Assembly (NCBI RefSeq): GCF_000737315.1
Contig: NZ_JMCB01000003.1
Span: forward strand, 1,054,001 to 1,118,000
Reading direction: 5' to 3'
Source of the DNA: Hyalangium minutum
GTDB lineage: Bacteria > Myxococcota > Myxococcia > Myxococcales > Myxococcaceae
Length of the DNA stretch: 64,000 nt
The stretch's first letter is position 1. Each line of letters starts with the position of its first letter. Under the pieces are notes generated by a model, which saw only the letters and a list, made by a program, of their open reading frames with translations, was not told the DNA's origin and ran no database searches. Both the position numbers and the translations under genes were made by a program. Of the stretch, positions 16,082 through 37,472 are shown piece after piece.

Positions 16082-16269
16082 GTGCAACCCCCTTGGATTG
16101 AGGTGGCGCAATCTCAAGCATCCCTCCCTCATGCGCCATCCACCCGGCGGGGCAGAAGGCCTGAGCCTTTCGGCCATGGAGGCTGCCTGCGACTCCAGGT
16201 ATCCTCGCGCCGTCGCGCCCTGTGGCCGCAGGCGTGTGCCCCCCATCCTCTCTCTCCGGAAAGACACCC

Positions 16270-19200
16270 ATGTCACCGCGCCGTCGCGCCTCCACGTCTT
16301 GGAGCCCGCTGAATCCCTGGCTCGCCGCCGCGCTCTGTGGCGGCCTGATGTTTCTCTTCACCACCTGCTCTCCCACCGAGCTCCCTCCCGAGCCCTCCGC
16401 GTCTGTCGACGGCCCCCCCGCTGTCGAGGTCTCGCCCCCGTTCGACGTCCAGACCGTCATTCGCAGAGTGCGTCTGGCTTTCCGCTCCGAGTCCGGAGCC
16501 TTCACGACGGGTCAGGCCACCTACGCTGTGCGTGTGAGCTCCGAAGGGCTCGTCCAGTTCACGCCGCATCACGTACGGACCGAGCAGGAACCGCCCATCC
16601 TGAGCGAGCCCCTGAAGGTGAAGACGGCCTCCATCTCCCGCGGGCCCCAGCCGCTGCTGCAGGCGGCCCGGGCGTCCGTGCGTGAGGATGGAGCGCTGAC
16701 GCTGGCGCGGGGTCCGGTGGTGGAGGTGCTGCAGAACGGCGACGAGGGCCTGGAGCAGCGCTGGGAGCTGGCCGCGAAGCCAGCAGGCACGGGTGACCTG
16801 GAGGTGCGGGTGGAGCTGGCGGGGCTGGACTACGTCAGCGAGACGGCGCTGGGGCACCACTACGTGGACCGCAAGACGGGGCTCGGGGTGCGCTACGGCA
16901 AGGCCACCTGGGTGGACGCGGCGGGAGTGAAGACCCCGGTGGATTCCGTCCGAGAAGGCCGGGCGCTGGTGATCCGCGTGCCGGCGCGGGTGCTGGAGCG
17001 CTCGGCGTTTCCGGCGGTGCTCGACCCGATCATCTCCCCGGAGATCAGCCCGGACACGCCGGTGCCTGCCCCCAACAACACCGATGAGTCGTCTCCCGCC
17101 ATCGCGGCGGGTGGGGGCCTCTACTTCGTGGCGTGGACGGTCACCACCTCCAGCAGCAACCTGGATGTTCTGGGCACGCGCGTACGGGCCTCGGACGGCG
17201 CAGTGCTGGACGTGAACGGCATCTCCCTGGGTGTCGGTTCGGCCCATCAACTGAACCCGGCTGTGGCCTCCAACGGAAGCGACTTCCTGGTGGTCTGGGA
17301 TGACAGCAGCGACATCCGCGCCGCTCGGGTGCGTGGCTCGACCGGTCAGATCCTGGGCTCCACCTTCTATGTCTCGACTGCGGCGAGCTCCCAGGGCCAG
17401 CCCGCCGTGGCCTTCGATGGCACGAATTACCTCGTGGTCTGGGACGACTACCGCAACGGCTCGCACTTCGACGTCTACGGCTCGCGCGTGAGGGCGTCGG
17501 ATGGCGTGGTGCTCGACCCGTCCGGCCTGCCCATCTCCACCGCGGCCGGGTGGCAGACCGCGCCCTCGGTGCACTTCGATGGCACCCAGTACCTGGTGGC
17601 CTGGAGCGATACCCGTGGCAGCTCGGAGGCAGACCTCTATGGCACCCGCGTCAGCGTGGCTGGGACGCCGCTCGACCCCGCGGGCATCCTCATCTCCTCG
17701 GCACCGGGCTACCAGTTTTCCCCGTCTATCGCCTCCGCCGGCGGCCTCTTCTTCCTCGCCTGGGACGACCGGCGAAATGAAGCCCAGTCCGATGTCTATG
17801 CCGCGAGGCTCCGGGCGTCGGATGGCGTGGTGCTCGACCCCGCGGGCATCCCCCTCGCCACCGGCCCCGCCAGCCAGACCGGTGTCTCCGCCGCTTCCGA
17901 CGGGAGCCGCTTCCTGGTCGTGTGGCACCACTCCACGGACTCGAACAGCTCCGACGTCTATGGCCAGCGCATCGGCATGGATGGCGGGCTGATCGACCCA
18001 GCGGCCGTGCCCCTGTTCGCGGCCACCACGCGCCAAGAGCGGGTGCCCACCGTGGTGTTCGATGGAACCCGGTTCATGGTGGTCTGGGTGAACACCTGGA
18101 ACGGCTTCAGCCGCGGGGACATCCATGGAGGGAGGGTGCAGCCCTCGGATCTGGCGGTCATCGACACGCCTCCGCTGCTCGTCTCCAGCACCGCCAACTC
18201 CGAGGGCGCGCCCGCCGTGGCCGCGGGAGCCAACAGCTACCTCGTCGTGTGGATGGACTCGCGCGGCTGGACGGGCGGCTTCGGTATCCATGGCGTACGG
18301 ATCCGGGCGTCGGATGGCGTGGTGCTCGACCCCGTGGCCATTCGCATCTCTCCCGCCATCGCCGGAGCAAGCAACCCCTCGGTGGCCTTCGACGGGAGCC
18401 ACTTCCTGGTGGTGTGGAACGACTACCGGGGCGCGGGGCCCGCGACCGCGCATGTCTATGGCGCACGGGTCCGGGAGGCGGATGGCGCGGTGCTCGACAC
18501 GGAGGGCATCGCTATCGCCAACACCTCCCAGAGGACCCAGTCGCAGCCAAAGGTGGCCTTCGGCGAGGGGATCTACCTGGTGACGTGGACGGACAACAAC
18601 GTGTCGGGCACGGCCGCAGACGTGTATGCCGCGCGAGTGAGGGCCTCGGACGGAGGGGTACTGGACCCCACGGGAATCGCGGTGGCGACGGCGGCCCACA
18701 ATGAGAGCGGCCCCGCCACGGCCTATGGTGGCGGCACCTTCTTGGTGGCCTGGAGTGACACGCGGAACGGGTTCTTGGAGAGTGACATCTACGCCGCGCG
18801 CGTGAGGGCCTCGGATGGCGTGATACTCGACAGCCCGGGTTTTCCTCTCAACACCAGAACGGGCGCCCAGAGCTCCGTGGCCCTGGCCTTCGATGGGAGC
18901 CTCTTCCTGGCAGTCTGGAAGGATGAGCGCACCTCGAACGCGGCCCTCTACGGGACGCGGGTGAGGCCCTCGGATGGCACGGTGCTCGATACCGGTGGCG
19001 GCCGCGTGCTCTACCCGGACAGCAGCTACAAGGGCGCTCCTGCCCTGGCCTTCGATGGGAGCAGCTACCTGCTGGTATGGCGGGACAGCGTGGGCCTCAC
19101 GTTCCGGCTCAACGGAGGAAGGCTGGCGCCGGATCTCACCCAGCTGGATGCCAGCCGGTTCCTCATCTCCGACATGAGCGGGCAGGTGTCGAGCACGACG

Positions 19201-22200
19201 ACCCCCGCGGCGGCCGCCTGGGGACGAGGGCGGTTCCTCGCCGCCTATGAGCCTTACGACACCGTGGCCGTCCAACTCCGCGTCAAGGTGAGGCTGGTGT
19301 CCGACCCTGTGAATGGCTCGCGCTGCATGAGCGGCACGGACTGCACGAGCGGCTTCTGCGTCGACGGAGTGTGCTGCGCCACCGCGTGCACAGGGGGGAC
19401 GTGCAGCGGAGGGACGTGCGAGTATCCGGCCGCGCGGCTCATCTGCCCCGCGAACATGGTGGCCGAAGCCACCAGCGCCACGGGAGCGCTCGTCAACTAC
19501 CCTCCCGCCATGGCCACGGGGACGGCGCCGCTCACGGTGACGTATAGCCAGGCCTCAGGGACCCGGTTCGCGATGGGCACCACCCCCGTCAACGCCAACC
19601 TCGTCGACGGCGAGGGGCGCACGGCCTCTTGCTCCTTCTCCGTCACGGTGCGAGACAGCACCGCGCCCGCCCTCTCCTGCTCTGGGGACCTCGTGGCTGA
19701 GGCGACGGGCCCCTCGGGGGCCACCGTCAGCTTCCCGGCGCCCACTGCCACGGATGCGGTGACCGCGGCGCCCACCGTCACGGTGAGCCACGTCAGCGGC
19801 AGCACCTTCCCGCTCGGTGTCACCTCGGTGACGGCCACCTCGGCGGACGCGGCCGGCAATACCAGCACGTGCACCTTCACCCTCACCGTGCGCGACACCA
19901 CGCCTCCGTTGCTGTCATGTCCCGGAAACCTCACGGTGGATGCCACGAGCACCATGGGCGCCAACGTCACCTACCCGCCCGCCACCGCCACGGACTTGGT
20001 GTCGATCGTCACGCCCGGCTACAGCAAGGCCTCGGGCTCGCACTTCGATGTGGGCTCCACACCTGTCTCCGTCACCGCAACCGATGGCGCGGGCAACAGC
20101 GCCTCGTGCACCTTCACCATCACCGTGCGCCTGCCGCCCGCGCCCCAGCTCACCTGTCCCGCGGACGTGGTGGCTGAGGCCACCAGCGCCTCGGGGGCGC
20201 TCGCCGGCTACCCGCCCGCCACCGCCACCGGCAGCGAGCCGCTCACGGTGACCTACAGCCAGGCCTCGGGAACGCAATTCAGCCTGGGCGCCACCTCTGT
20301 TACCGCCACGGTGACCGATAGCCTGAGCCGCACCCACTCCTGCTCCTTCACCGTCACCGTGCGCGACACCACCGCCCCCTCCGTCTCATGCCCGGGAGAT
20401 CTCATCGCCGAGGCGACGGGACCGAGCGGAGCGGCGGTGAGCTACCTGCCGCCCACGACCACGGATGCCGTCACCTCCGCTCCCACCGTCTCGGTGAGCC
20501 ACGCCAGCGGCAGCACCTTCCCGCTCGGCTCCACCCGGGTGACCGCCACCGCGGCGGATGCGGCCGGGAACACCTCCACCTGCGCCTTCACCCTCACCGT
20601 CCGTGACACCTCAGGGCCCACGCTGTCCTGTCCCGGAAACCTCACGGTGGATGCCACGAGCACCACGGGCGCCAACGCCACCTACCCGCCCGCTACCGCC
20701 ACGGACTCGGTGTCGAGCGTCACGCTGAGCTACAGCAAGGCCTCGGGCTCGCACTTCGACGTGGGCTCCACGCCTGTCTCCGTCACCGCAACCGATGGCG
20801 CGGGCAACAGCGCCTCGTGCACCTTCACCATCACCGTGCGCCTACCGCCCGCGCCCCAGCTCACCTGTCCCGCGAACGGGGTGGCCGAGGCCACCAGCGC
20901 CTCGGGGGCGCTCGTCACCTATCCGCCCGCGACGGCAACCGGCAGCGAGCCGCTCACGGTGACCTACAGCCAGGCCTCGGGCACTGGGTTCGCGCTGGGC
21001 GCCACCTCCATCACCGCTACGGTGACTGACGGCCTGGGCCGCACCCACTCCTGCTCCTTCTCCGTCACCGTGCGTGACACCACTGCGCCCTCCCTCTCCT
21101 GTCCTCAGGACCTTGTGGCTGAGGCGACGGGGCCAAATGGAGCGGCCGTGAGCTACTTGCCACCCACGGCCACGGATGCCGTCACCTCCGCTCCCACCGT
21201 CTCGGTGAGCCACGCCAGCGGCAGCACCTTCCCGCTCGGCTCCACCCGGGTGAGCGCCACCGCGACAGACGCGGCCGGGAACGCCTCCACCTGCGCCTTC
21301 ACCCTCACCGTCCGCGACACCTCGGAGCCCACCCTCTCCTGCCCCGCCAGCGTGACAGCGGAGGCCACGAGCGCTCAGGGCGCGGCCGTCACCTATCCAC
21401 CGGCAACAGCCTCGGACACCTCGTCCTCGCCGACGCTCCACTACAGCCAGGTCTCCGGAACGCGCTTCAGCCTGGGAACCACGGCCGTCACTGTCACCGC
21501 CACGGATGGCGCGGGCAACACCTCCTCGTGCACCTTCACCGTCATCGTGCGCGATACCACGCCCCCAGCCCTCGCCTGTGGCGCGGACCTCGTCGCCGAA
21601 GCCACGGCACGGTCCGGTGCCAGCGTGAACTTCTCGTTGCCCACGGCCACGGACGCCGTCACCGCAACCCCTGTCCTCACGGCCAGCCATGCATCCCGGA
21701 GCCTCTTTCCCCTGGGAGCCACCCGGGTCACCGTGACGGCCTCGGACGAGGCCGGAAACACCCGCACGTGTGCCTTCACCATCACCGTGCGGGACACCAC
21801 CGCTCCGGAAGTGGGCTGCCCGGGTCCGCTCACCGCCGAGGCCGAGGACGCCACCGGCGCCCCCGTCGCCTTCTCCGTGCCCGCGCCGCGTGACACCGTG
21901 ACGTCATCGCCCACGGTGACAGCCAGCCACTCGCCCGGCAGCCGCTTTCCCCTGGGCACCACCCCAGTGCTCCTCTCCGCTTCGGACGAGGCGGGCAACA
22001 CCGCCTCGTGCACCTTCAGCGTCACCGTCCGCGACACCATTGTCCCGCAGCTCACCTGTCCGACGCATGTTCAGGTGATGGATGCGCCGCCGGAGGGCAT
22101 GGCCGTGAACTACCCGCCGGCCACCACCTGGGATGCGGTGTCCTCGCCCGTGCTGAGCTACAGCCAGGCCTCCGGCACGGTCTTCCCCGTGGGGAGGACT

Positions 22201-22410
22201 TCCGTGACGGTGACGGCAACGGATGCCGCCGGCAACAGCGCCAGCTGCGCCTTCGAGGTGCGCGTGGCCCCGTCCATCCAGGAGCCTCCGGAGCCTCCTC
22301 CCTCCGAGGGTTGTGGCTGTGGCGCGGGCAGCAGCACGTCCGCGGGCTTCAGCTGGGGAGCGTTGATGTTGCTCGCCTGGGGAGTGACTCGCCGCCGGCT
22401 CCCCTGTTGA
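16270..22410 (+). CDS. Large cell-surface protein: N-terminal domain, 14 propeller-type repeats, Cys-rich module, 12 HYR domains, MYXO-CTERM-like sorting tail
   Basis: 14 x PAVAFDG..YLVVW repeats; CMSGTDCTSGFCVDGVCC; 12 x C...FP.G.T.V...A.D.AGN...C.F...VRDT; tail GCGCG...WGALMLLAWGVTRRR. Confidence 0.9.
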   Translation: MSPRRRASTSWSPLNPWLAAALCGGLMFLFTTCSPTELPPEPSASVDGPPAVEVSPPFDVQTVIRRVRLAFRSESGAFTTGQATYAVRVSSEGLVQFTPHHVRTEQEPPILSEPLKVKTASISRGPQPLLQAARASVREDGALTLARGPVVEVLQNGDEGLEQRWELAAKPAGTGDLEVRVELAGLDYVSETALGHHYVDRKTGLGVRYGKATWVDAAGVKTPVDSVREGRALVIRVPARVLERSAFPAVLDPIISPEISPDTPVPAPNNTDESSPAIAAGGGLYFVAWTVTTSSSNLDVLGTRVRASDGAVLDVNGISLGVGSAHQLNPAVASNGSDFLVVWDDSSDIRAARVRGSTGQILGSTFYVSTAASSQGQPAVAFDGTNYLVVWDDYRNGSHFDVYGSRVRASDGVVLDPSGLPISTAAGWQTAPSVHFDGTQYLVAWSDTRGSSEADLYGTRVSVAGTPLDPAGILISSAPGYQFSPSIASAGGLFFLAWDDRRNEAQSDVYAARLRASDGVVLDPAGIPLATGPASQTGVSAASDGSRFLVVWHHSTDSNSSDVYGQRIGMDGGLIDPAAVPLFAATTRQERVPTVVFDGTRFMVVWVNTWNGFSRGDIHGGRVQPSDLAVIDTPPLLVSSTANSEGAPAVAAGANSYLVVWMDSRGWTGGFGIHGVRIRASDGVVLDPVAIRISPAIAGASNPSVAFDGSHFLVVWNDYRGAGPATAHVYGARVREADGAVLDTEGIAIANTSQRTQSQPKVAFGEGIYLVTWTDNNVSGTAADVYAARVRASDGGVLDPTGIAVATAAHNESGPATAYGGGTFLVAWSDTRNGFLESDIYAARVRASDGVILDSPGFPLNTRTGAQSSVALAFDGSLFLAVWKDERTSNAALYGTRVRPSDGTVLDTGGGRVLYPDSSYKGAPALAFDGSSYLLVWRDSVGLTFRLNGGRLAPDLTQLDASRFLISDMSGQVSSTTTPAAAAWGRGRFLAAYEPYDTVAVQLRVKVRLVSDPVNGSRCMSGTDCTSGFCVDGVCCATACTGGTCSGGTCEYPAARLICPANMVAEATSATGALVNYPPAMATGTAPLTVTYSQASGTRFAMGTTPVNANLVDGEGRTASCSFSVTVRDSTAPALSCSGDLVAEATGPSGATVSFPAPTATDAVTAAPTVTVSHVSGSTFPLGVTSVTATSADAAGNTSTCTFTLTVRDTTPPLLSCPGNLTVDATSTMGANVTYPPATATDLVSIVTPGYSKASGSHFDVGSTPVSVTATDGAGNSASCTFTITVRLPPAPQLTCPADVVAEATSASGALAGYPPATATGSEPLTVTYSQASGTQFSLGATSVTATVTDSLSRTHSCSFTVTVRDTTAPSVSCPGDLIAEATGPSGAAVSYLPPTTTDAVTSAPTVSVSHASGSTFPLGSTRVTATAADAAGNTSTCAFTLTVRDTSGPTLSCPGNLTVDATSTTGANATYPPATATDSVSSVTLSYSKASGSHFDVGSTPVSVTATDGAGNSASCTFTITVRLPPAPQLTCPANGVAEATSASGALVTYPPATATGSEPLTVTYSQASGTGFALGATSITATVTDGLGRTHSCSFSVTVRDTTAPSLSCPQDLVAEATGPNGAAVSYLPPTATDAVTSAPTVSVSHASGSTFPLGSTRVSATATDAAGNASTCAFTLTVRDTSEPTLSCPASVTAEATSAQGAAVTYPPATASDTSSSPTLHYSQVSGTRFSLGTTAVTVTATDGAGNTSSCTFTVIVRDTTPPALACGADLVAEATARSGASVNFSLPTATDAVTATPVLTASHASRSLFPLGATRVTVTASDEAGNTRTCAFTITVRDTTAPEVGCPGPLTAEAEDATGAPVAFSVPAPRDTVTSSPTVTASHSPGSRFPLGTTPVLLSASDEAGNTASCTFSVTVRDTIVPQLTCPTHVQVMDAPPEGMAVNYPPATTWDAVSSPVLSYSQASGTVFPVGRTSVTVTATDAAGNSASCAFEVRVAPSIQEPPEPPPSEGCGCGAGSSTSAGFSWGALMLLAWGVTRRRLPC

Positions 22411-31362: not shown

Positions 31363-32103
31363 ATGATCACCTTGCTCGTGCAGTTGGACCAGTTGCTGCG
31401 GGGAGAGTCGACTCGCCTGGAGCTGCTTCGCCGCGGGTCCATCGATATCTCGCCCGGTGCCATTGCCCTCATGTCGCTCCCGCTGAGTTTCTTCTCCGGC
31501 ATCTGCATGGGGGTGTTCTCACTGACCGGGTCTGGCTCACTCGCGCCCATGCAGATCATTGCCAGCGCCCTGAAGATGCCGGCGCTCTTTTTCCTGACTC
31601 TCGTCGTCACGTTCCCTTCGCTCTACGTGTTCAACGCCCTGGTCGGCTCGAGGCTGGCGCTCTACTCGGTGCTGAAGCTCCTGGTCGCCGCCATCGGCAT
31701 CATGCTGACCGTGCTGGCTTCCCTGGGGCCCATCGTCGCATTCTTCGCCGTGACCACGACCAGCTACGCCTTCATGAAGCTGCTGAACGTGGCGGTGTTC
31801 ACCATCGCCGGGGTGATGGGGGGTGGTTTCCTGCTCCGCACGCTCCATCGCCTCAACCTCGCGAGCGACGACACGCCCCCTCCCGCGAGCCCCGGGGCGC
31901 CGCGCGCGCTCCCTGTCGAGCCCGGCGCCAACGTGCGCAACCTGTTCCGCATCTGGGTGGTGGTCTTCGCCCTCGTCGGCGCGCAGATGGCCTGGATCCT
32001 CCGCCCCTTCATCGGCGACCCCGAACAACCCTTCCAGTGGTTCCGTCCCGTCACTTCCAACTTCTTCGAAGCCGTGTGGCGGGCCTTCCAGAGCCTCTTC
32101 TAG
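31363..32103 (+). CDS. Polytopic membrane protein of unknown function (paralogue 1)
   Basis: About 5 TM segments; SALKMPALFFLT...PSLY and GAQMAWILRPFIG motifs. Confidence 0.8.
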   Translation: MITLLVQLDQLLRGESTRLELLRRGSIDISPGAIALMSLPLSFFSGICMGVFSLTGSGSLAPMQIIASALKMPALFFLTLVVTFPSLYVFNALVGSRLALYSVLKLLVAAIGIMLTVLASLGPIVAFFAVTTTSYAFMKLLNVAVFTIAGVMGGGFLLRTLHRLNLASDDTPPPASPGAPRALPVEPGANVRNLFRIWVVVFALVGAQMAWILRPFIGDPEQPFQWFRPVTSNFFEAVWRAFQSLF

Positions 32104-32118
32104 GTGTCAGGCGGTGGC

Positions 32119-32799
32119 ATGAGCGGGCTGCTCCTCCAAGCGGTCGACTTGCTGCGGACGGGAACGCCCTCCTCGCGGCATTCCGAGGCTCCCCGCGTTC
32201 GCCTGCTGCTGACGCTGATCGTCCTCTTCGGTGCGGGCTACGGCGCCGCCATGGGCAGCTACGGCGGCGAGGTGGGGCTCGGAGGCGCCCGGCCGCTGCA
32301 GATGCTCTACGCGTCCGTCAAGGTGCCGCTCCTCCTGCTGGCGACGTTCGGTCTGAGCCTGCCCAGCTACTTCGTCATCAACTCCCTGCTGGGCTTGCGT
32401 GAGGATCTCGGCGCCGCGGTGCGTGCCCTATTGGCCACGCAGGCCTGCCTCACCCTCGTCCTGTGCGCGCTCGCCCCGTTCACACTCTTCTGGTACGTGA
32501 GCTACCGGGGCTACGAGGAGGCCACGCTCTTCAACGCGCTGGCCTTCGCTGTGGCCAGTGGCTCGGGCCAGGTGCTGCTGAGACGGCTCTATCGGCCGCT
32601 GATCGCGCGTGACGTCAGGCACCGCGTACTGCTGCGGCTCTGGTTGATCATCTACGCCTTCGTCGGCATCCAGATGGGGTGGCTGCTCCGACCCTTCATC
32701 GGAATCCCCGGCACACCTACCCGCTTCCTACGGGAAGACACCTGGAGCAATGCCTATGTCTTCGTGGCCGGCAGGATCTGGGAGGTTCTCAACCGGTAG
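32119..32799 (+). CDS. Polytopic membrane protein of unknown function (paralogue 2)
   Basis: ASVKVPLLLLAT...PSYF and GIQMGWLLRPFIG motifs shared with the upstream gene. Confidence 0.8.
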   Translation: MSGLLLQAVDLLRTGTPSSRHSEAPRVRLLLTLIVLFGAGYGAAMGSYGGEVGLGGARPLQMLYASVKVPLLLLATFGLSLPSYFVINSLLGLREDLGAAVRALLATQACLTLVLCALAPFTLFWYVSYRGYEEATLFNALAFAVASGSGQVLLRRLYRPLIARDVRHRVLLRLWLIIYAFVGIQMGWLLRPFIGIPGTPTRFLREDTWSNAYVFVAGRIWEVLNR

Positions 32800-32832
32800 T
32801 TGGGACGTGCTACGGCATTGCCCTCGTAACAG

Positions 32833-33100
32833 CTACTGCGTCCAGAAGATGGACGAGGTGCGATCATTCATCGCGTCCCCGACGTAGGGGCCCCCCCGCC
32901 GCAGTCGCCCAAGGGCCCTCCCACCGCCGGGCCGTTCGGGTAGTCGTAGTGGTACGAGTGATTGCACCCGGCGAAGGACTTCGACGCGGTGATGACGGAG
33001 CTCCAGAACGAGGGCAGGTTTGTGAAGTAGCTGCCGCACCCGCCCATTGGGCGTCGTACCGGCTGAAAGTGCTCGGCGTGAAGAAGCCCCAGTAACCCCC
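32833..33100 (-). pseudogene. Frameshifted remnant of a small beta/gamma-crystallin-like (inhibitor I36-like) protein
   Basis: GGCGSYFTNLPSFWSSVITASKSFAGCNHSYHYDYPN...DCGGG shifts at a G7 run into PYVGDAMNDRTSSIFWTQ-stop. Confidence 0.5.
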
Positions 33101-33104
33101 TTGG

Positions 33105-34262
33105 CTATGTCATGTACGAGATTTCGGGGGAGGCATTGGTGCGCACGGAATTGGTTTCCTCCGCCTCGTCGGCCAGATGCGCCATCCCTGCATGAAACGG
33201 AATCAGCGCGGCGAGTTCTTGTGCGTACTGCGTCGCAAACCGCTTGAAGGTACCTTCAATGCTGCCCGGCACCAGTGTGAGACGCTCCACCTCTGCGGGC
33301 ACTGTCTTGCCGGTCCTGTCGACGAAGTGCAGATTGACGTCGGGATAGTGCGCCGCAAGCGCCGTATTGAAGGCCCGTAGCACCCGGCGGCAGTAGGAGC
33401 AGGGGCGCTTGGTGCCGATAACCACCATTCGTGTCAGCGCCTCTCCATTCTTCAGCTTTTGTGCCAACACCCCAAGTAGGGCCTGCTCCGCATGGAGGGT
33501 CCCCTGAATGGTCTGGATGTCGGCCTTTCTGTAAATCTTCTCCCGCTTCTTGTTGTGCCAGAAGTCGAAGTTGGGAGGGTAGTATTTGCTGAGGGGGTAG
33601 AGGCCCTGGCCTGCCCTGTAGTTGGCCGCGAAGTACAGGGCCCCGTTGAGGATGGTGGCCTGGACCTCCATGATGTCCTCTTCCTTGTTGGCGCGGTCGT
33701 AGACGAATTTGGAGGCGACCTTGAGGAAGGTCGCCTCGGAGAGAGCCTCTCCTTCGGGCTGTAGCTGAACCAGGGCCCCAGCGGGCACTGGCTGCCAAAG
33801 CGTGTCATGCATCGCTGCCACGGACAGAGGTGCCTCCTCCAGGCGCGAGTCCAGGAGATGCCCGCCGCGCACCAGTCTCGCGGCCGCCCGCCGCCCCATG
33901 CTGTCCGCCTCGGCCTCGAGCGCCGCATCCTGGAGCACCACCCCGCTGCGGCCCCAGCGGCCGCGCGCCCGCCCCGTGCGCTGCTGGAGCACATGCGTGA
34001 GCTCATGCCCCAGTAACTCCAGGCCGCGCCCCGTCCGAGCCGAGTACTCACCGGGCGCGAAGTGGATGTCGGAGCCAAGGGTGAAGGCCCGCGCCCCCAG
34101 GGCACTGACGTGGGGCCCCACAAGGATGCGCACGTCAGAGAAGTCCGCATCAAAGAACTGCTCCATGGAGCGGCGCACGGACGGAGGCAGTGGCCTCCCC
34201 CCCGTGGGCAGCAGGAGGTCCTCGGCCAGGGCCGTCACGTTGCCTGGCCGAGAGGTTTGCAT
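33105..34262 (-). CDS. DUF4157 (eCIS core) domain protein with C-terminal Zn-dependent deaminase-fold toxin domain
   Basis: LP..VR..ME.FF.ADFSDVRI...GARAFT.GSDIHF...LLGHELTHVLQQ...LEAEAD (DUF4157); then HAEQ...KRPCSYC. Confidence 0.85.
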   Translation of the reverse strand: MQTSRPGNVTALAEDLLLPTGGRPLPPSVRRSMEQFFDADFSDVRILVGPHVSALGARAFTLGSDIHFAPGEYSARTGRGLELLGHELTHVLQQRTGRARGRWGRSGVVLQDAALEAEADSMGRRAAARLVRGGHLLDSRLEEAPLSVAAMHDTLWQPVPAGALVQLQPEGEALSEATFLKVASKFVYDRANKEEDIMEVQATILNGALYFAANYRAGQGLYPLSKYYPPNFDFWHNKKREKIYRKADIQTIQGTLHAEQALLGVLAQKLKNGEALTRMVVIGTKRPCSYCRRVLRAFNTALAAHYPDVNLHFVDRTGKTVPAEVERLTLVPGSIEGTFKRFATQYAQELAALIPFHAGMAHLADEAEETNSVRTNASPEISYMT

Positions 34263-34463
34263 CGGTTTGTGGGGATGAGGCACGGCGTACCTCCTGGAGG
34301 AGGCGGTCATCGTACCTGGGGGAAAAGAAGCGACAAGAATCCAGGCTCTGAGCCAGAACACGCCTGTTCGTCGGAGAGCCTCTGTCATCTGGAACGGCTC
34401 CGCCTGCCGGCGTGAGGACCTAGGAGGTTCTGTGTCCTTACCCTACCCCTCACCTCCTCGCTC

Positions 34464-34793
34464 TCAGGGAAGCAACTGGATGTCGTCGACGTAGAGCGAG
34501 CCCTGGTCTCCGCCCGACTGGTCCTGGAGGTAGAACTCCCGAAGCGTGCCAGTGCTCACACCGAGGGCGCTGAACGGGATGACGATCCGCTGCCAGGTGC
34601 CCGGAGTGATGGCGTGGCCCAGGGCGCCACGTCCAGACGGCGCTCTCCGAGCACATTCGAGCCATCGGTGAGCAGCACTCGCGCGATCTGCCCGCCGTTA
34701 CGGATGCCCTCGGTGCCAAGGTAGTAGGTCGCGGGGATGCCGCGTGCGTTGAGCGCCGGGCGCGCCGCAGTGAACTGCGAGGGCCAGCCGTCA
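34464..34793 (-). pseudogene. Collapsed remnant: polysaccharide deacetylase N-terminus joined to a carbohydrate-binding-module C-terminus, with frameshift
   Basis: DGWPSQFTAARPALNARGIPATYYL, then after a 1-nt shift LGHAITPGTWQRIVIPFSALG...QDQSGGDQGSLYVDDIQLLP-stop. Confidence 0.6.
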
Positions 34794-34816
34794 CTCCTTG
34801 AGCTCCGCAGCAGGGG

Positions 34817-35650
34817 TCATCGCACGATAGCGGTCTCCGTGATCATCTTGGCGATCCATTGCATGTAGTAATGCGTGCTCGTATACGTTGACGTCCCTCC
34901 GATGCTCACACTCGAGAGGATACCCACGAGCTGATTCTCACGAAAGCAACCTCCCCCGCTATCGCCACATGCTGCTAAAGCTTGACTCTGATCGGAGATT
35001 TGAAACACCTGTCCACCTTCTCCCGTATCAGAGACCGTATTGTTGCCGAAGCGGCGGGTTGGAACGGTGTCCCGATAGGCGCACTGCCCCTTGCCATCGA
35101 CCTGATCCACACCGAAACCCGTGACAGTGATGCTGGCGCCTGGGCTAACTCCGCCTGGATACAGTGAAGCGGAGGAAATGGCCTGTGCCACCGCTTGAGT
35201 AAGCCGAATCACTGCCAGATCCGCATTCGCTGATACAATCTTCTCCTGGCCATCCATCACCCTGAGCACGATCTTGAAATCGGGGTGAGGCAGCACATCG
35301 CCCTCGTACGCCTTGAAATCGCCTGGCTTGTTTGGCTCCGAGGAAGAGTAGACCGCCGTTTGAATGAAGGCCCGCTTCAAACAGGACTTGAGGTCTCTGA
35401 TCTTCGCGTCTCTATCCCAGCGGGCATTTCTGCACACACAGTGAGCTGCAGTCAGGATCAGCCTTGGATGGAGCAGCACTCCACTGCAGTACGGTCTGTT
35501 GTCCCCGTTTTTCGTGAGCGCAACCACCGATGAGTACGTGTTGCTGGCATCCCAGATACCGGGTGGCAGAACTGCAAGAACTTCGTCGCGCCGGGTTCGC
35601 GGAGCAGCCGCAGGTTGCTGCGTGGCACAACCACCGCACACGCTCACCAT
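34817..35650 (-). CDS. Trypsin-like (S1) serine protease, probable lipoprotein; likely true start 35698 interrupted by TGA at codon 5
   Basis: YCSGVLLHPRLILTAAHC, ADLAVI, CGDSGGGC (complete His-Asp-Ser triad). Confidence 0.85.
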   Translation of the reverse strand: MVSVCGGCATQQPAAAPRTRRDEVLAVLPPGIWDASNTYSSVVALTKNGDNRPYCSGVLLHPRLILTAAHCVCRNARWDRDAKIRDLKSCLKRAFIQTAVYSSSEPNKPGDFKAYEGDVLPHPDFKIVLRVMDGQEKIVSANADLAVIRLTQAVAQAISSASLYPGGVSPGASITVTGFGVDQVDGKGQCAYRDTVPTRRFGNNTVSDTGEGGQVFQISDQSQALAACGDSGGGCFRENQLVGILSSVSIGGTSTYTSTHYYMQWIAKMITETAIVR

Positions 35651-35713: not shown

Positions 35714-36703
35714 TTACTTCATGCCACCGTCCATGCGCGGTGGGATGGTGATTGACTTCTGGATTTGAACGTTGAGCCACTCGCGATACAGGTGGACGCT
35801 CGTGCATCCCGGCATAGGCCCTGCCCCCTTACCGGATAAGCCGACGAGAGACATCCCCGTCTTGTCTTGGCGCAAGCACAGTTCTCCACTGCCCATGGTC
35901 AACGGTTCGCCATGCGGGGCAAGCACCATTTCATCAGCACCTCCAGCGGGGAGTCTTTTGACTTCCTTTTGGCCTGAACGCCTGACCCCATGAATGAAAT
36001 CGGTAGCCGCATCAAGACCGTATCCCGCGACACGGATGACTTCCCCCAATTTGACCTCAGAGTCCGCGAGGCGAACGGACATGGACGGATCTTCCACGGG
36101 GCTGTCCAAAAGAGCAACGGCGAGATCCGCATGACTGGAGAGGACAAGCGGCTGGGCATCCAAGAGGATTTTCAAAGCAGGGTGGACGCTCACCTGGGCG
36201 CGATACGTCTGGGCTCGAAATCCTGGAGGACCGTCGGAGCTTTCCGCTCGCGGAAAATAGGTGATCGTTGTCACCTCCATCTCTTCCGCACACGCCACCC
36301 CATCAATCACAAGCTGGGCATCACTTCCTGGCTCCACGAGTGAATGCCGCGGGCACACACAATGGCCAGCGGTCAGGACCACTCTTGGGCTGATAAGCAC
36401 GCCAGTGCACTTGAATGTTTCCCCTCCGTTCACAGAGGCCGCCACCATGGTGGCAAATGCGAATTGATTCTCCAGGTCCTCCACGCCATCGGAGAGGTCA
36501 ATCCGATCGTCAACAGGCAACACCTCACCCTCACGCAAGTTGGGCGATGAGGCATTCCCTCCATCCACACCGGATGGGCCTGCCCCTGCATCGGCGGCAA
36601 GTCTGGAGGCGGTGGAGCGCGAGGCGCATCTGCCGTAGGCGAAAAGCCCTCCCACGCAGAGAGTTGCGAACACAATCGCCTTCCAAGTTCCGCGCATGCC
36701 CAT
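35714..36703 (-). CDS. Trypsin-like protease homologue with degenerate Ser motif and N-terminal membrane anchor
   Basis: CTGVLISPRVVLTAGHC and ADLAVA present; GDSGG replaced by MGSGE. Confidence 0.8.
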   Translation of the reverse strand: MGMRGTWKAIVFATLCVGGLFAYGRCASRSTASRLAADAGAGPSGVDGGNASSPNLREGEVLPVDDRIDLSDGVEDLENQFAFATMVAASVNGGETFKCTGVLISPRVVLTAGHCVCPRHSLVEPGSDAQLVIDGVACAEEMEVTTITYFPRAESSDGPPGFRAQTYRAQVSVHPALKILLDAQPLVLSSHADLAVALLDSPVEDPSMSVRLADSEVKLGEVIRVAGYGLDAATDFIHGVRRSGQKEVKRLPAGGADEMVLAPHGEPLTMGSGELCLRQDKTGMSLVGLSGKGAGPMPGCTSVHLYREWLNVQIQKSITIPPRMDGGMK

Positions 36704-36707
36704 GGCT

Positions 36708-37472
36708 TCAGCTTTCTTCCCGAGACACCACGTCCCGCGAGAAGGACTCCCCGGGCACCTGCACGGCATGGAGCTGCTCGCGCAGCGAGCCCAACAGCTC
36801 AGGCGGATCTCCCTGGCGGAAAGCGGCGAGCCCGGCCTCGAAGTCGGCGCGCGCTCCTGCGGTGTCCCCCTGCCGGGCGCGCAGCACTCCTCGGTCCCGT
36901 AGCAGCTCTGGGTCCACCGGCTCGTCCTGATACGTGGCCAGCGCGTCGGTGAGATCCTGGATGGCCTCCGTCAGCTTTCCGAGCTGGGCCCGTGCCTGGG
37001 CGCGCTGCTGCAGGAGCCACGGGTTCCCCGGATCCTCGTCCAGCGCCTGCGTCCAGTCGCGCTCAGCCTCGGCGTGGCGACCAAGTGCTCGCAGGGACTC
37101 GGCGCGCTTCGCGTAGAGGATGACCAGCTTGCGGTGTCCCACGGCCTCCACCGTGTTGAAGTCGGCCACCGCCTCCTCGTGTCGGCCCACCCTTGCGAGC
37201 GTCAGGGCCCGGTGCAGCCGCGTGGTGAGGTGCCCCGGCGCCAGATCCAGGACACGGTCGAACCACTGGAGCGCCTCGGCGGGAGCACGACCCCAGACGG
37301 CGAGCGTCAGCCCCGCCTCCAGCAGCACTCGCACCTGTGTGGGGTGGGCCTCGGCCAGTTCCCGGATCCGCGCCAGCGCTTGCTCATAGCGCCCGGTGCG
37401 CCGCAGGCGATCCACCTCGCGCAGCGGCGCCCCCAGCTCCGGCAGCCACCGTGTGCGTCCCTTGTGCTCCAT
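36708..37472 (-). CDS. Tetratricopeptide repeat protein
   Basis: Multiple RA......G....A..D...AL...P helical repeats. Confidence 0.88.
   Translation of the reverse strand: MEHKGRTRWLPELGAPLREVDRLRRTGRYEQALARIRELAEAHPTQVRVLLEAGLTLAVWGRAPAEALQWFDRVLDLAPGHLTTRLHRALTLARVGRHEEAVADFNTVEAVGHRKLVILYAKRAESLRALGRHAEAERDWTQALDEDPGNPWLLQQRAQARAQLGKLTEAIQDLTDALATYQDEPVDPELLRDRGVLRARQGDTAGARADFEAGLAAFRQGDPPELLGSLREQLHAVQVPGESFSRDVVSREES

Follow-up and report, generated by a model that had tools for sequence, protein, structure and literature searches.

A 392-amino acid (aa) protein of Hyalangium minutum is proposed to be an injected, zinc-dependent base-deaminase toxin that is used against other organisms; the probability of this reading is put at about 0.65. 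The protein is encoded on the minus strand at positions 33105-34283 of a 64,000-nucleotide (nt) stretch of contig NZ_JMCB01000003.1 (positions 1,054,001 to 1,118,000 of the forward strand), which is referred to as the window. In silico, it consists of four parts, namely a proline-rich N-terminus, a zincin-like DUF4157/eCIS_core domain, an Arg/Ala-rich linker and a 222-aa C-terminal domain with a predicted zinc-dependent deaminase fold. The features of the gene are as follows.

33105..34283, minus strand: complete coding sequence, 392 aa plus stop (open reading frame list, independent gene call, homologue starts, dN/dS)
34290..34295, minus strand: Shine-Dalgarno-like AGGAGG, 6 nt upstream of the GTG at 34283 (read from the sequence)
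34194..34283, minus strand: short proline-rich N-terminal region of 30 aa, VPHPHKPMQTSRPGNVTALAEDLLLPTGGR (sequence)
33972..34193, minus strand: DUF4157 / eCIS_core / PVC-metallopeptidase domain (Pfam PF13699)
33981..34007, minus strand: HELTHVLQQ, the HExxHxxQ zinc-binding signature (invariant in a 9-sequence alignment)
33903..33920, minus strand: LEAEAD, Glu-bearing helix, third zinc-ligand region of HExxHxxQ…E (conserved)
33774..33971, minus strand: Arg/Ala/Gly-rich linker, GC 0.76 (composition, sequence)
33108..33773, minus strand: C-terminal deaminase-like toxin domain, 222 aa (family profile, AlphaFold2 model, sub-threshold Pfam matches)
33660..33671, minus strand: MEVQ, strand-1 motif (Q invariant and E nearly so across the family)
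33618..33632, minus strand: FAANY, with the invariant Asn (N51, domain numbering) at the end of strand 2 (alignment and model)
33483..33494, minus strand: HAEQ, opening helix 2, with the predicted zinc-ligand His and the predicted catalytic Glu (alignment, model)
33390..33416, minus strand: GTKRPCSYC (G-x-K-x-PCxxC), two predicted zinc-ligand Cys at the N-terminus of helix 3
33108..33143, minus strand: C-terminal tail RTNASPEISYMT, conserved in the closer subfamily only (alignments)

The N-terminal half of the protein matched Pfam family PF13699 (eCIS_core, identical to DUF4157) with 90.4 bits, where the cut-off is 22 (E = 8.4e-26), over model positions 1-78 of 79. The match spans aa 66-139 of the maximal open reading frame (ORF) around the gene, which has 427 aa (33105-34388, minus strand), and thus aa 31-104 of the 392-aa protein; positions in the 427-aa frame are converted by subtracting 35, and the C-terminal domain corresponds to aa 171-392. 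Together with GHELTHVLQQ at aa 127-136 (427-aa numbering), this match confirms the DUF4157 assignment of an earlier note, which had been made from the DNA sequence alone. Residues L122-E-A-E-A126 (392-aa numbering) were also invariant in the 9-sequence alignment. The signature HExxHxxQ-E defines the 'PVC-metallopeptidase' (Zhang et al. 2012, PMC3482391), and since HExxHxxQ…E is intact in the H. minutum protein, it can be counted among this group. As expected for a PVC-metallopeptidase, DUF4157 is located N-terminally of a variable toxin domain, and homologues with the same DUF4157 end in other C-termini, which are GNAT domains or regions without any Pfam match.

The motifs that the earlier note had quoted for the C-terminal half could all be located, with MEVQA at aa 240-244, FAANY at aa 253-257, HAEQ at aa 299-302 and GTKRPCSYC at aa 325-333 of the 427-aa frame. 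In a 119-sequence alignment of the family, H264, C295 and C298 were invariant, and E206, Q208, N221, A265, E266, Q267, G290 and P294 were each conserved in at least 90% of the sequences (392-aa numbering). The same pattern was obtained with a trimmed 48-sequence alignment of the domain, in which the H and Q of HAEQ were invariant and its A and E nearly so, and in which G120, P124, C125 and C128 (domain numbering) did not vary. The invariant or near-invariant set of the family therefore comprises E-x-Q, N, HAEQ, G and PCxxC. A conserved N in or at the end of strand 2 has also been listed for deaminase clades (PMC3239186). When the window was translated in all six frames, the pattern [HC]xE…PCxxC was found once, at the toxin gene; in shuffled windows it occurred 0.15 times per window. 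Because of this background the motif by itself is modest evidence, but its invariance across 48-119 relatives makes it non-random.

Profile comparisons of the C-terminal domain gave deaminase families. All eight close members (the window protein and seven full-length relatives) matched Toxin-deaminase, dCMP_cyt_deam_1, OTT_1508_deam and APOBEC_N in the same region below threshold; SNAD4 was matched in the same sub-threshold manner by six of the eight, and the best E-value over all deaminase families was 1.5e-5. In sequence searches of the PDB, performed with the single protein and two profiles, cytidine deaminases of the E. coli type ranked first or close to it, with alignments over HAE and PCxxC and marginal scores. 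These searches also returned chance matches to the CxxC of thioredoxins/glutaredoxins and to antibodies.

An AlphaFold2 model of the domain, calculated with the 48-sequence alignment, reached a predicted local distance difference test (pLDDT) value of 91.5 and a predicted template modelling (pTM) score of 0.90; it superseded an earlier AlphaFold run on an 8-sequence alignment with a pLDDT of 63. In this model, α1 (domain residues 9-28), β1 (34-42) and β2 (45-52) are followed by an insert of ~40 residues, α2 (95-108, with HAE at 94-96), β3 (115-120), α3 (126-142, with PCxxC at 124-128), β4 (147-151), a 23-residue loop (152-174), α4 (175-190) and short C-terminal helices. The predicted order α1-β1-β2-α2-β3-α3-β4-α4 is that of the deaminase fold, in which HAE opens helix 2 and PCxxC opens helix 3. 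Because HAE/PCxxC are conserved, the predicted topology fits and sub-threshold deaminase matches were obtained for all close homologues, membership of the C-terminal domain in the deaminase superfamily is well supported in silico, and the domain is read here as a real, yet strongly divergent deaminase-like domain. Of the deaminase-fold claim in the earlier note, the conserved motifs, the topology and the consistency of the matches could thus be upheld, but all of the matches stay below threshold.

In the proposed mechanism, the N-terminal module would steer the protein to a contractile injection machine whose genes lie elsewhere in the genome, either an extracellular contractile injection system (eCIS) or a type VI secretion system (T6SS), and the DUF4157 metallopeptidase may release or process the toxin. 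Within the target cell, the C-terminal domain would hydrolytically deaminate a base (DNA or RNA cytosine being the most likely one), with His264, Cys295 and Cys298 holding the zinc and Glu266 acting as the proton shuttle (392-aa numbering). The expected outcome would be mutagenesis of, or lethal damage to, the target cell. No cognate immunity gene for self-protection is evident, which is typical of PVC-type toxins; those combining a PVC-metallopeptidase with a deaminase are usually found without immunity genes (PMC3482391, PMC3239186). The lack of such a gene suggests that the protein is used against distantly related organisms, which may be prey or competitors.

Several observations weigh against this proposal. 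No eCIS or T6SS component could be identified among the sizeable ORFs of the window, which contain no sheath, tube, baseplate, DUF4255, spike, AAA+, VgrG, PAAR or Hcp gene; the statements of the earlier note that eCIS structural genes are absent and that the gene is an orphan within the window are borne out by this. Similarly, no eCIS or T6SS gene was present within 10 kb of homologues at seven other loci, and the conserved neighbourhood of the relatives in Polyangium is housekeeping-like, with genes for superoxide dismutase, a GMC oxidoreductase and RNase T. The N-terminal region has just 30 aa and is far shorter than characterised loading sequences; in a comparison of position only, it occupies the place where eCIS cargo carries a disordered loading sequence. 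No curated deaminase model reached its threshold with the window protein, which scored 18-19.7 bits against 29.6 for the best one, PF14424, 17-18.7 against 25 for PF00383, 15-16.4 against 27 for PF14441 and 13-15.6 against 25 for PF08210. NCBIfam, like Pfam, offers no model that covers the C-terminal domain above threshold, and in this respect the earlier note's suggestion of a possibly new clade is supported. The fifth core strand of the fold was not clearly predicted in the AlphaFold2 model. When this model was compared with the PDB and BFVD using Foldseek, no significant neighbour was found (best E = 0.22, TM scores of about 0.23-0.38). The top three PDB matches were ADAT2/3, blasticidin-S deaminase and guanine deaminase (7bv5_D, 2z3j_D and 1tiy_B), non-significant with E = 0.22-0.42 and TM 0.23-0.36, and the best annotated BFVD matches were CMP/dCMP and RibD deaminases, again non-significant. 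For the cytidine deaminase (CDA)-like fold foreseen by the earlier note, the predicted topology is therefore in agreement, but a significant match to a solved deaminase was not obtained. Finally, a profile-profile check of the family against one OTT_1508-bearing protein, performed with hhalign, gave a weak alignment with 42.7% probability over 42 columns.

The absence of a significant Foldseek deaminase match, together with JAB/AMSH proteases among the weak matches, would also fit a C-terminal domain that has kept the zinc scaffold but is no base deaminase, and is instead another hydrolase on a deaminase-like fold or a zinc-dependent binding domain. The invariant E-x-Q motif and the large insert, which the curated families used for comparison did not show, point in the same direction. 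However, the signature of the deaminase superfamily is precisely HAE at the start of helix 2, PCxxC at the start of helix 3 and an Asn at the end of strand 2, JAB domains have another set of motifs, and the sequence-profile matches were all to deaminases, so that a non-deaminase role of the scaffold is considered improbable.

With respect to delivery of the proposed deaminase toxin, the earlier note had called the protein eCIS cargo. The statistical tie of DUF4157 to eCIS holds: across genomes, its enrichment at eCIS loci has an odds ratio of 2614, and an eCIS is present in half of the surveyed Myxococcus genomes, where the eCIS locus of M. xanthus has a DUF4157 gene at its edge. That an eCIS is the delivery machine could not be upheld, as DUF4157 also occurs at T6SS loci. 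Of the characteristics of eCIS-associated toxins (EATs), the protein has the DUF4157 domain, which in EATs may also be encoded by an adjacent gene, but its gene has no eCIS operon in its proximity within the 64-kb window; for 88% of the EAT training set, an eCIS operon is no more than about ten genes away. A literature search found no report on eCIS in H. minutum.

It is possible, though not likely, that the protein is specifically a T6SS effector rather than eCIS cargo, with DUF4157 and the N-terminus coupling it to VgrG, PAAR or Hcp for contact-dependent killing. The main indication comes from a metagenome-assembled genome (MAG) of Magnetospirillum sp. (JANQAI010000011.1, L010:2831-14698), in which tssA-B-C-hcp-tssE-F-G are followed directly by a gene of the deaminase family, a DUF4157 gene, an unknown gene and vgrG. 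The family member encoded there has 283 aa and is 41% identical to the H. minutum deaminase domain. In addition, a DUF4157 protein of Sorangium adjoins a T6SS cluster that includes a gene for PAAR-like DUF4280, five DUF4157 genes are clustered with DUF4280 on another contig (L008), and DUF4157 has been noted in some T6SS effectors in the literature. The Magnetospirillum, Sorangium and DUF4280-cluster observations weaken the eCIS label. On the other hand, T6SS, VgrG, PAAR and Hcp genes are among those missing from the window, the enrichment of DUF4157 at eCIS loci is overwhelming, the Myxococcus data likewise favour eCIS, and the T6SS-embedded relative itself lacks DUF4157 and carries another N-terminal motif (PPPT[RK]F). 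Because T6SS-linked DUF4157 genes stand on one side and the eCIS enrichment on the other, the delivery machine cannot be named. If the domain is active, the occurrence of this toxin family beside DUF4157 in a T6SS cluster would be a warning not to take the Pfam name 'eCIS core' as proof of eCIS delivery.

The motif PPPT[RK]F, usually followed by AQ[PA]K, is present in each of the three consecutive putative effector genes between tssG and vgrG of the Magnetospirillum cluster (L010:9863-12700). The first two of them begin with it, and in the third ORF, as listed, it occurs at a more internal position. The homologue of Niveispirillum irakense (L012:9611-10672) contains the motif three times. From these sequences, PPPT[RK]F may serve Rhodospirillales as an effector-targeting motif that is so far uncharacterised.

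An immunity gene was searched for by tblastn of the neighbours in the window, including the 59-aa downstream ORF, against 13 loci, and no match was obtained. The gene tables of the homologue loci contained neither a shared neighbouring gene family nor an immunity candidate. That neither an immunity gene nor secretion machinery is located nearby could also be explained if the protein were a non-toxic intracellular enzyme, that is, a salvage or modification deaminase or a regulator in which DUF4157 serves as an ordinary peptidase or chaperone domain. The syntenic, housekeeping-like locus of the Polyangium relatives and the JGI label 'cytidine deaminase' on one relative agree with such a role. 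This is regarded as quite improbable, as the models for CDA, TadA, dCMP, guanine and RibD deaminases (equivalog or family level) gave only 11.9-18.1 bits against cut-offs of 114-275, the family is rare, patchy and almost entirely metagenomic, the domain is fused to one that marks injected toxins, and a dN/dS of 0.4-0.5 and an atypical codon usage suit an accessory gene.

Deaminases serve in several defence systems, and the surroundings of the gene are variable and contain foreign genes and gene remnants. These points would also be compatible with an anti-phage defence or abortive-infection deaminase acting in the producer on nucleotides or nucleic acids of the phage or host. PADLOC, applied to the deaminase domain and the neighbouring genes, gave no defence-system match beyond generic weak matches, an NCBIfam scan yielded no named family, no sensor or partner gene is conserved beside the homologues, and DUF4157 is not a known defence module. 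A role in defence is thus highly improbable.

Compared with described proteins, the architecture of the proposed toxin is already documented. Fusions of PVC-metallopeptidase with nucleic-acid deaminases were described in 2011-2012 (Iyer et al. PMC3239186; Zhang et al. PMC3482391), and one DUF4157-deaminase protein, EAT11 from Amycolatopsis nigrescens, is lethal to both E. coli and yeast (Geller et al. 2021, PMC8213781). The present gene adds one more DUF4157-deaminase protein. Like the known PVC-metallopeptidase-deaminase toxins, it has an N-terminal DUF4157 with HExxHxxQ…E, a variable C-terminal domain of the deaminase type, no adjacent immunity gene and a free-living soil bacterium as its host. 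In contrast to EAT11, which is encoded at an eCIS operon, the H. minutum gene is located >30 kb from any injection-system gene, and unlike the known DUF4157-deaminase toxins its C-terminal domain matches no curated deaminase family above threshold. What is new here is a deaminase family that has neither a curated model nor a solved structure; the likeness to EAT11 is by description only.

The closest described relatives of the C-terminal domain were sought among the deaminase clades. A helix 4 after strand 4 defines the 'helix-4 division' of deaminases (Iyer et al., PMC3239186), and a long loop that connects strand 4 with helix 4 unites AID/APOBEC, XOO_2897 and OTT_1508 and suggests cytosine specificity (PMC3239186). 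According to the model, the domain would fall within the helix-4 division, with AID/APOBEC-XOO_2897-OTT_1508 as the nearest described group, yet would form a distinct uncurated family. The nearest described clade is OTT_1508-like (PF14441). Seven fringe members of the family match PF14441 (OTT_1508_deam) with a best E of 9.6e-8, and both groups share HxE and PCxxC and a Gly/Lys motif right before the cysteines. An extended strand-4/helix-4 loop is predicted at domain residues 152-174 in the H. minutum protein. The OTT_1508 clade has also been reported in PVC-metallopeptidase, T6SS and PVC delivery contexts (PMC3239186). It is characterised by GxxK before CxxC and by an extended loop that holds aromatic-xx-P and a conserved polar residue, which is His in most cases (PMC3239186). 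In the H. minutum protein the Gly/Lys motif is shifted (G-T-K-R-P-C), and the His/aromatic-xx-P signature of the loop was not seen in the 48-sequence alignment of its family. Membership in the OTT_1508 clade was rejected on account of scores of 15.0-16.4 bits against 27, the weak hhalign alignment and a motif of the form G-x-K-x-PC instead of GxxK…CxxC.

Cgo1 and Cgo2, which are cargo proteins of AlgoCIS, resemble the H. minutum protein in having an N-terminal region, DUF4157 and a variable C-terminal effector domain. They differ from it in their C-terminal domains, in being encoded with their own eCIS and in their long disordered loading sequences, compared with ~30 aa and no nearby eCIS in H. 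minutum. For AlgoCIS cargo, the disordered N-terminus was described as the loading signal and DUF4157 as dispensable for loading (2026 bioRxiv preprint).

DddA, acting on cytosine in double-stranded DNA, and SsdA, acting on cytosine in single-stranded DNA, are interbacterial deaminase toxins delivered by T6SS. They belong to other clades (SCP1.201-like and MafB19-like), each with a cognate immunity protein. They are similar to the H. minutum protein in carrying a zinc-dependent deaminase-fold domain at the C-terminus of an effector, and a relative of the H. minutum domain is encoded in a T6SS cluster. Neither DddA nor SsdA surfaced as a sequence or structural match when the PDB was searched with the H. 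minutum domain, and no dedicated comparison was made.

An extended proposal, which is held to be rather doubtful, is that the C-terminal domain founds an uncharacterised deaminase clade with a differing substrate or context specificity and offers a new scaffold for base editing, with DUF4157 perhaps serving both eCIS and T6SS. The marks of such a founding clade, tentatively, would be E-x-Q / N / HAEQ / G-x-K-x-PCxxC, a large insert separating strand 2 from helix 2, and the conserved tail. Its different specificity, as a speculative reading, might concern double-stranded DNA, RNA, adenine or a new target motif. Should the domain prove active, a compact (~220 aa) and structurally divergent deaminase family joins the toxin repertoire and the predatory myxobacteria gain a candidate nucleic-acid-mutating weapon. 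Base-editing enzymes have repeatedly been obtained from comparable divergent deaminase families.

The family was delimited by an exhaustive hidden Markov model search over 1.84 billion representative proteins, clustered at 50% identity, which gave 132 clusters at E <= 1e-3, of which 70 reached <= 1e-10 and 22 reached <= 1e-30. Word-indexed homologue searches with two profiles added few relatives, and a profile scan with a narrower alignment returned five genomes, among which that of H. minutum was not included. DUF4157 is present in 21 of 119 relatives. The members from named organisms are those of H. minutum, N. irakense and two Polyangium species; the others are derived from MAGs or metagenomes, including Acidobacteriota, an uncultured delta-proteobacterium and Magnetospirillum, and most are annotated as hypothetical. 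The family is thus rare and patchy, and spans Myxococcota, Rhodospirillales and Acidobacteriota.

Distant members of the alignment stop after helix 4 and lack the C-terminal tail RTNASPEISYMT. In one of the alignments, R211 and A214 in this tail and E203 and N208 just upstream of it were invariant. At its other end, the deaminase-like domain starts directly after the linker with LVQLQ (33759-33773), which corresponds to a conserved [LVI]Q[RLM] motif. This motif is kept across the family, also in members without DUF4157, and may be a processing or recombination junction.

In the two Polyangium species (L015:10001-10780 and L016:7688-8464), the distant members have 258-259 aa, lack DUF4157 and are found at a syntenic locus. 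A convergent gene of 204-214 aa is located ~15 bp downstream of the family member at these loci and possibly has an immunity role. The homologue in the delta-proteobacterium MAG (L004:10001-11039, the same as L011:10001-10661) is divided over a 262-aa ORF and the next ORF of 103 aa, which jointly span the deaminase domain. The two parts are separated by a frameshift, which either arose in assembly or marks a pseudogene.

For the toxin gene itself, the start codon was reassigned. The earlier note had placed the start at the ATG at 34262, which is 21 nt inside the gene. The GTG at 34283 is likely to be the true start and is preferred because AGGAGG is located 6 nt upstream, an independent gene call uses this codon for a 392-aa product, and the closest homologues open with VPH(P/F)H at the equivalent GTG. 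The 427-aa ORF with its hydrophobic N-terminus was excluded as the product on the basis of the homologue starts and the ribosome-binding site at the GTG. In comparison with three homologues, the ratio of nonsynonymous to synonymous substitution rates (dN/dS) was 0.40-0.49 overall and 0.28-0.54 per module, which indicates a gene under purifying selection that is nonetheless evolving fast. Since this ratio is combined with a strong ribosome-binding site before the start, the gene is regarded as live.

The raw GC content of the C-terminal domain is 0.60, compared with 0.68-0.76 elsewhere in the gene. The drop described in the earlier note is therefore real, but it is mostly caused by codon positions 1 and 2 and thus by amino-acid composition; the gap in GC content at third codon positions (GC3) is small, with 0.78 for the domain compared with 0.80-0.85 in the remaining parts of the gene and 0.87-0.91 in neighbouring core genes.

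Two genes encoding trypsin-like serine proteases (34817-35650 and 35714-36769, minus strand) are located directly upstream of the toxin gene. At ~0.63, compared with 0.87-0.91 in the surrounding genes, their GC3 suggests that they are recently acquired foreign DNA. The toxin gene is also flanked by frameshifted gene remnants at 34450-34800 and 32830-33050 (both minus strand), of which one is a C-terminal fragment ending in …EFYLQDQSGGDQGSLYVDDIQLLP before its stop codon, and the other is a small Cys/Gly-rich fragment ending in …NDRTSSIFWTQ before the stop. The low-GC3 trypsin-like genes and these remnants suggest that the toxin locus is a variable, partly foreign and decaying patch. A scan for promoters and terminators and a repeat search around the gene yielded nothing informative and no mobile-element boundaries.

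Convergent with the toxin gene are two tandem paralogues (31363-32103 and 32104-32799, plus strand) with 32% identity. Both are hydrophobic and resemble multi-pass membrane proteins, share a C-terminal W-x-LRPFIG, have no Pfam match and have no counterpart near the homologues. Further away in the window, an ORF at 16222-22410 (plus strand) encodes a 2062-aa protein with nine HYR domains and Ig-like segments, which is probably a giant surface or adhesion protein.

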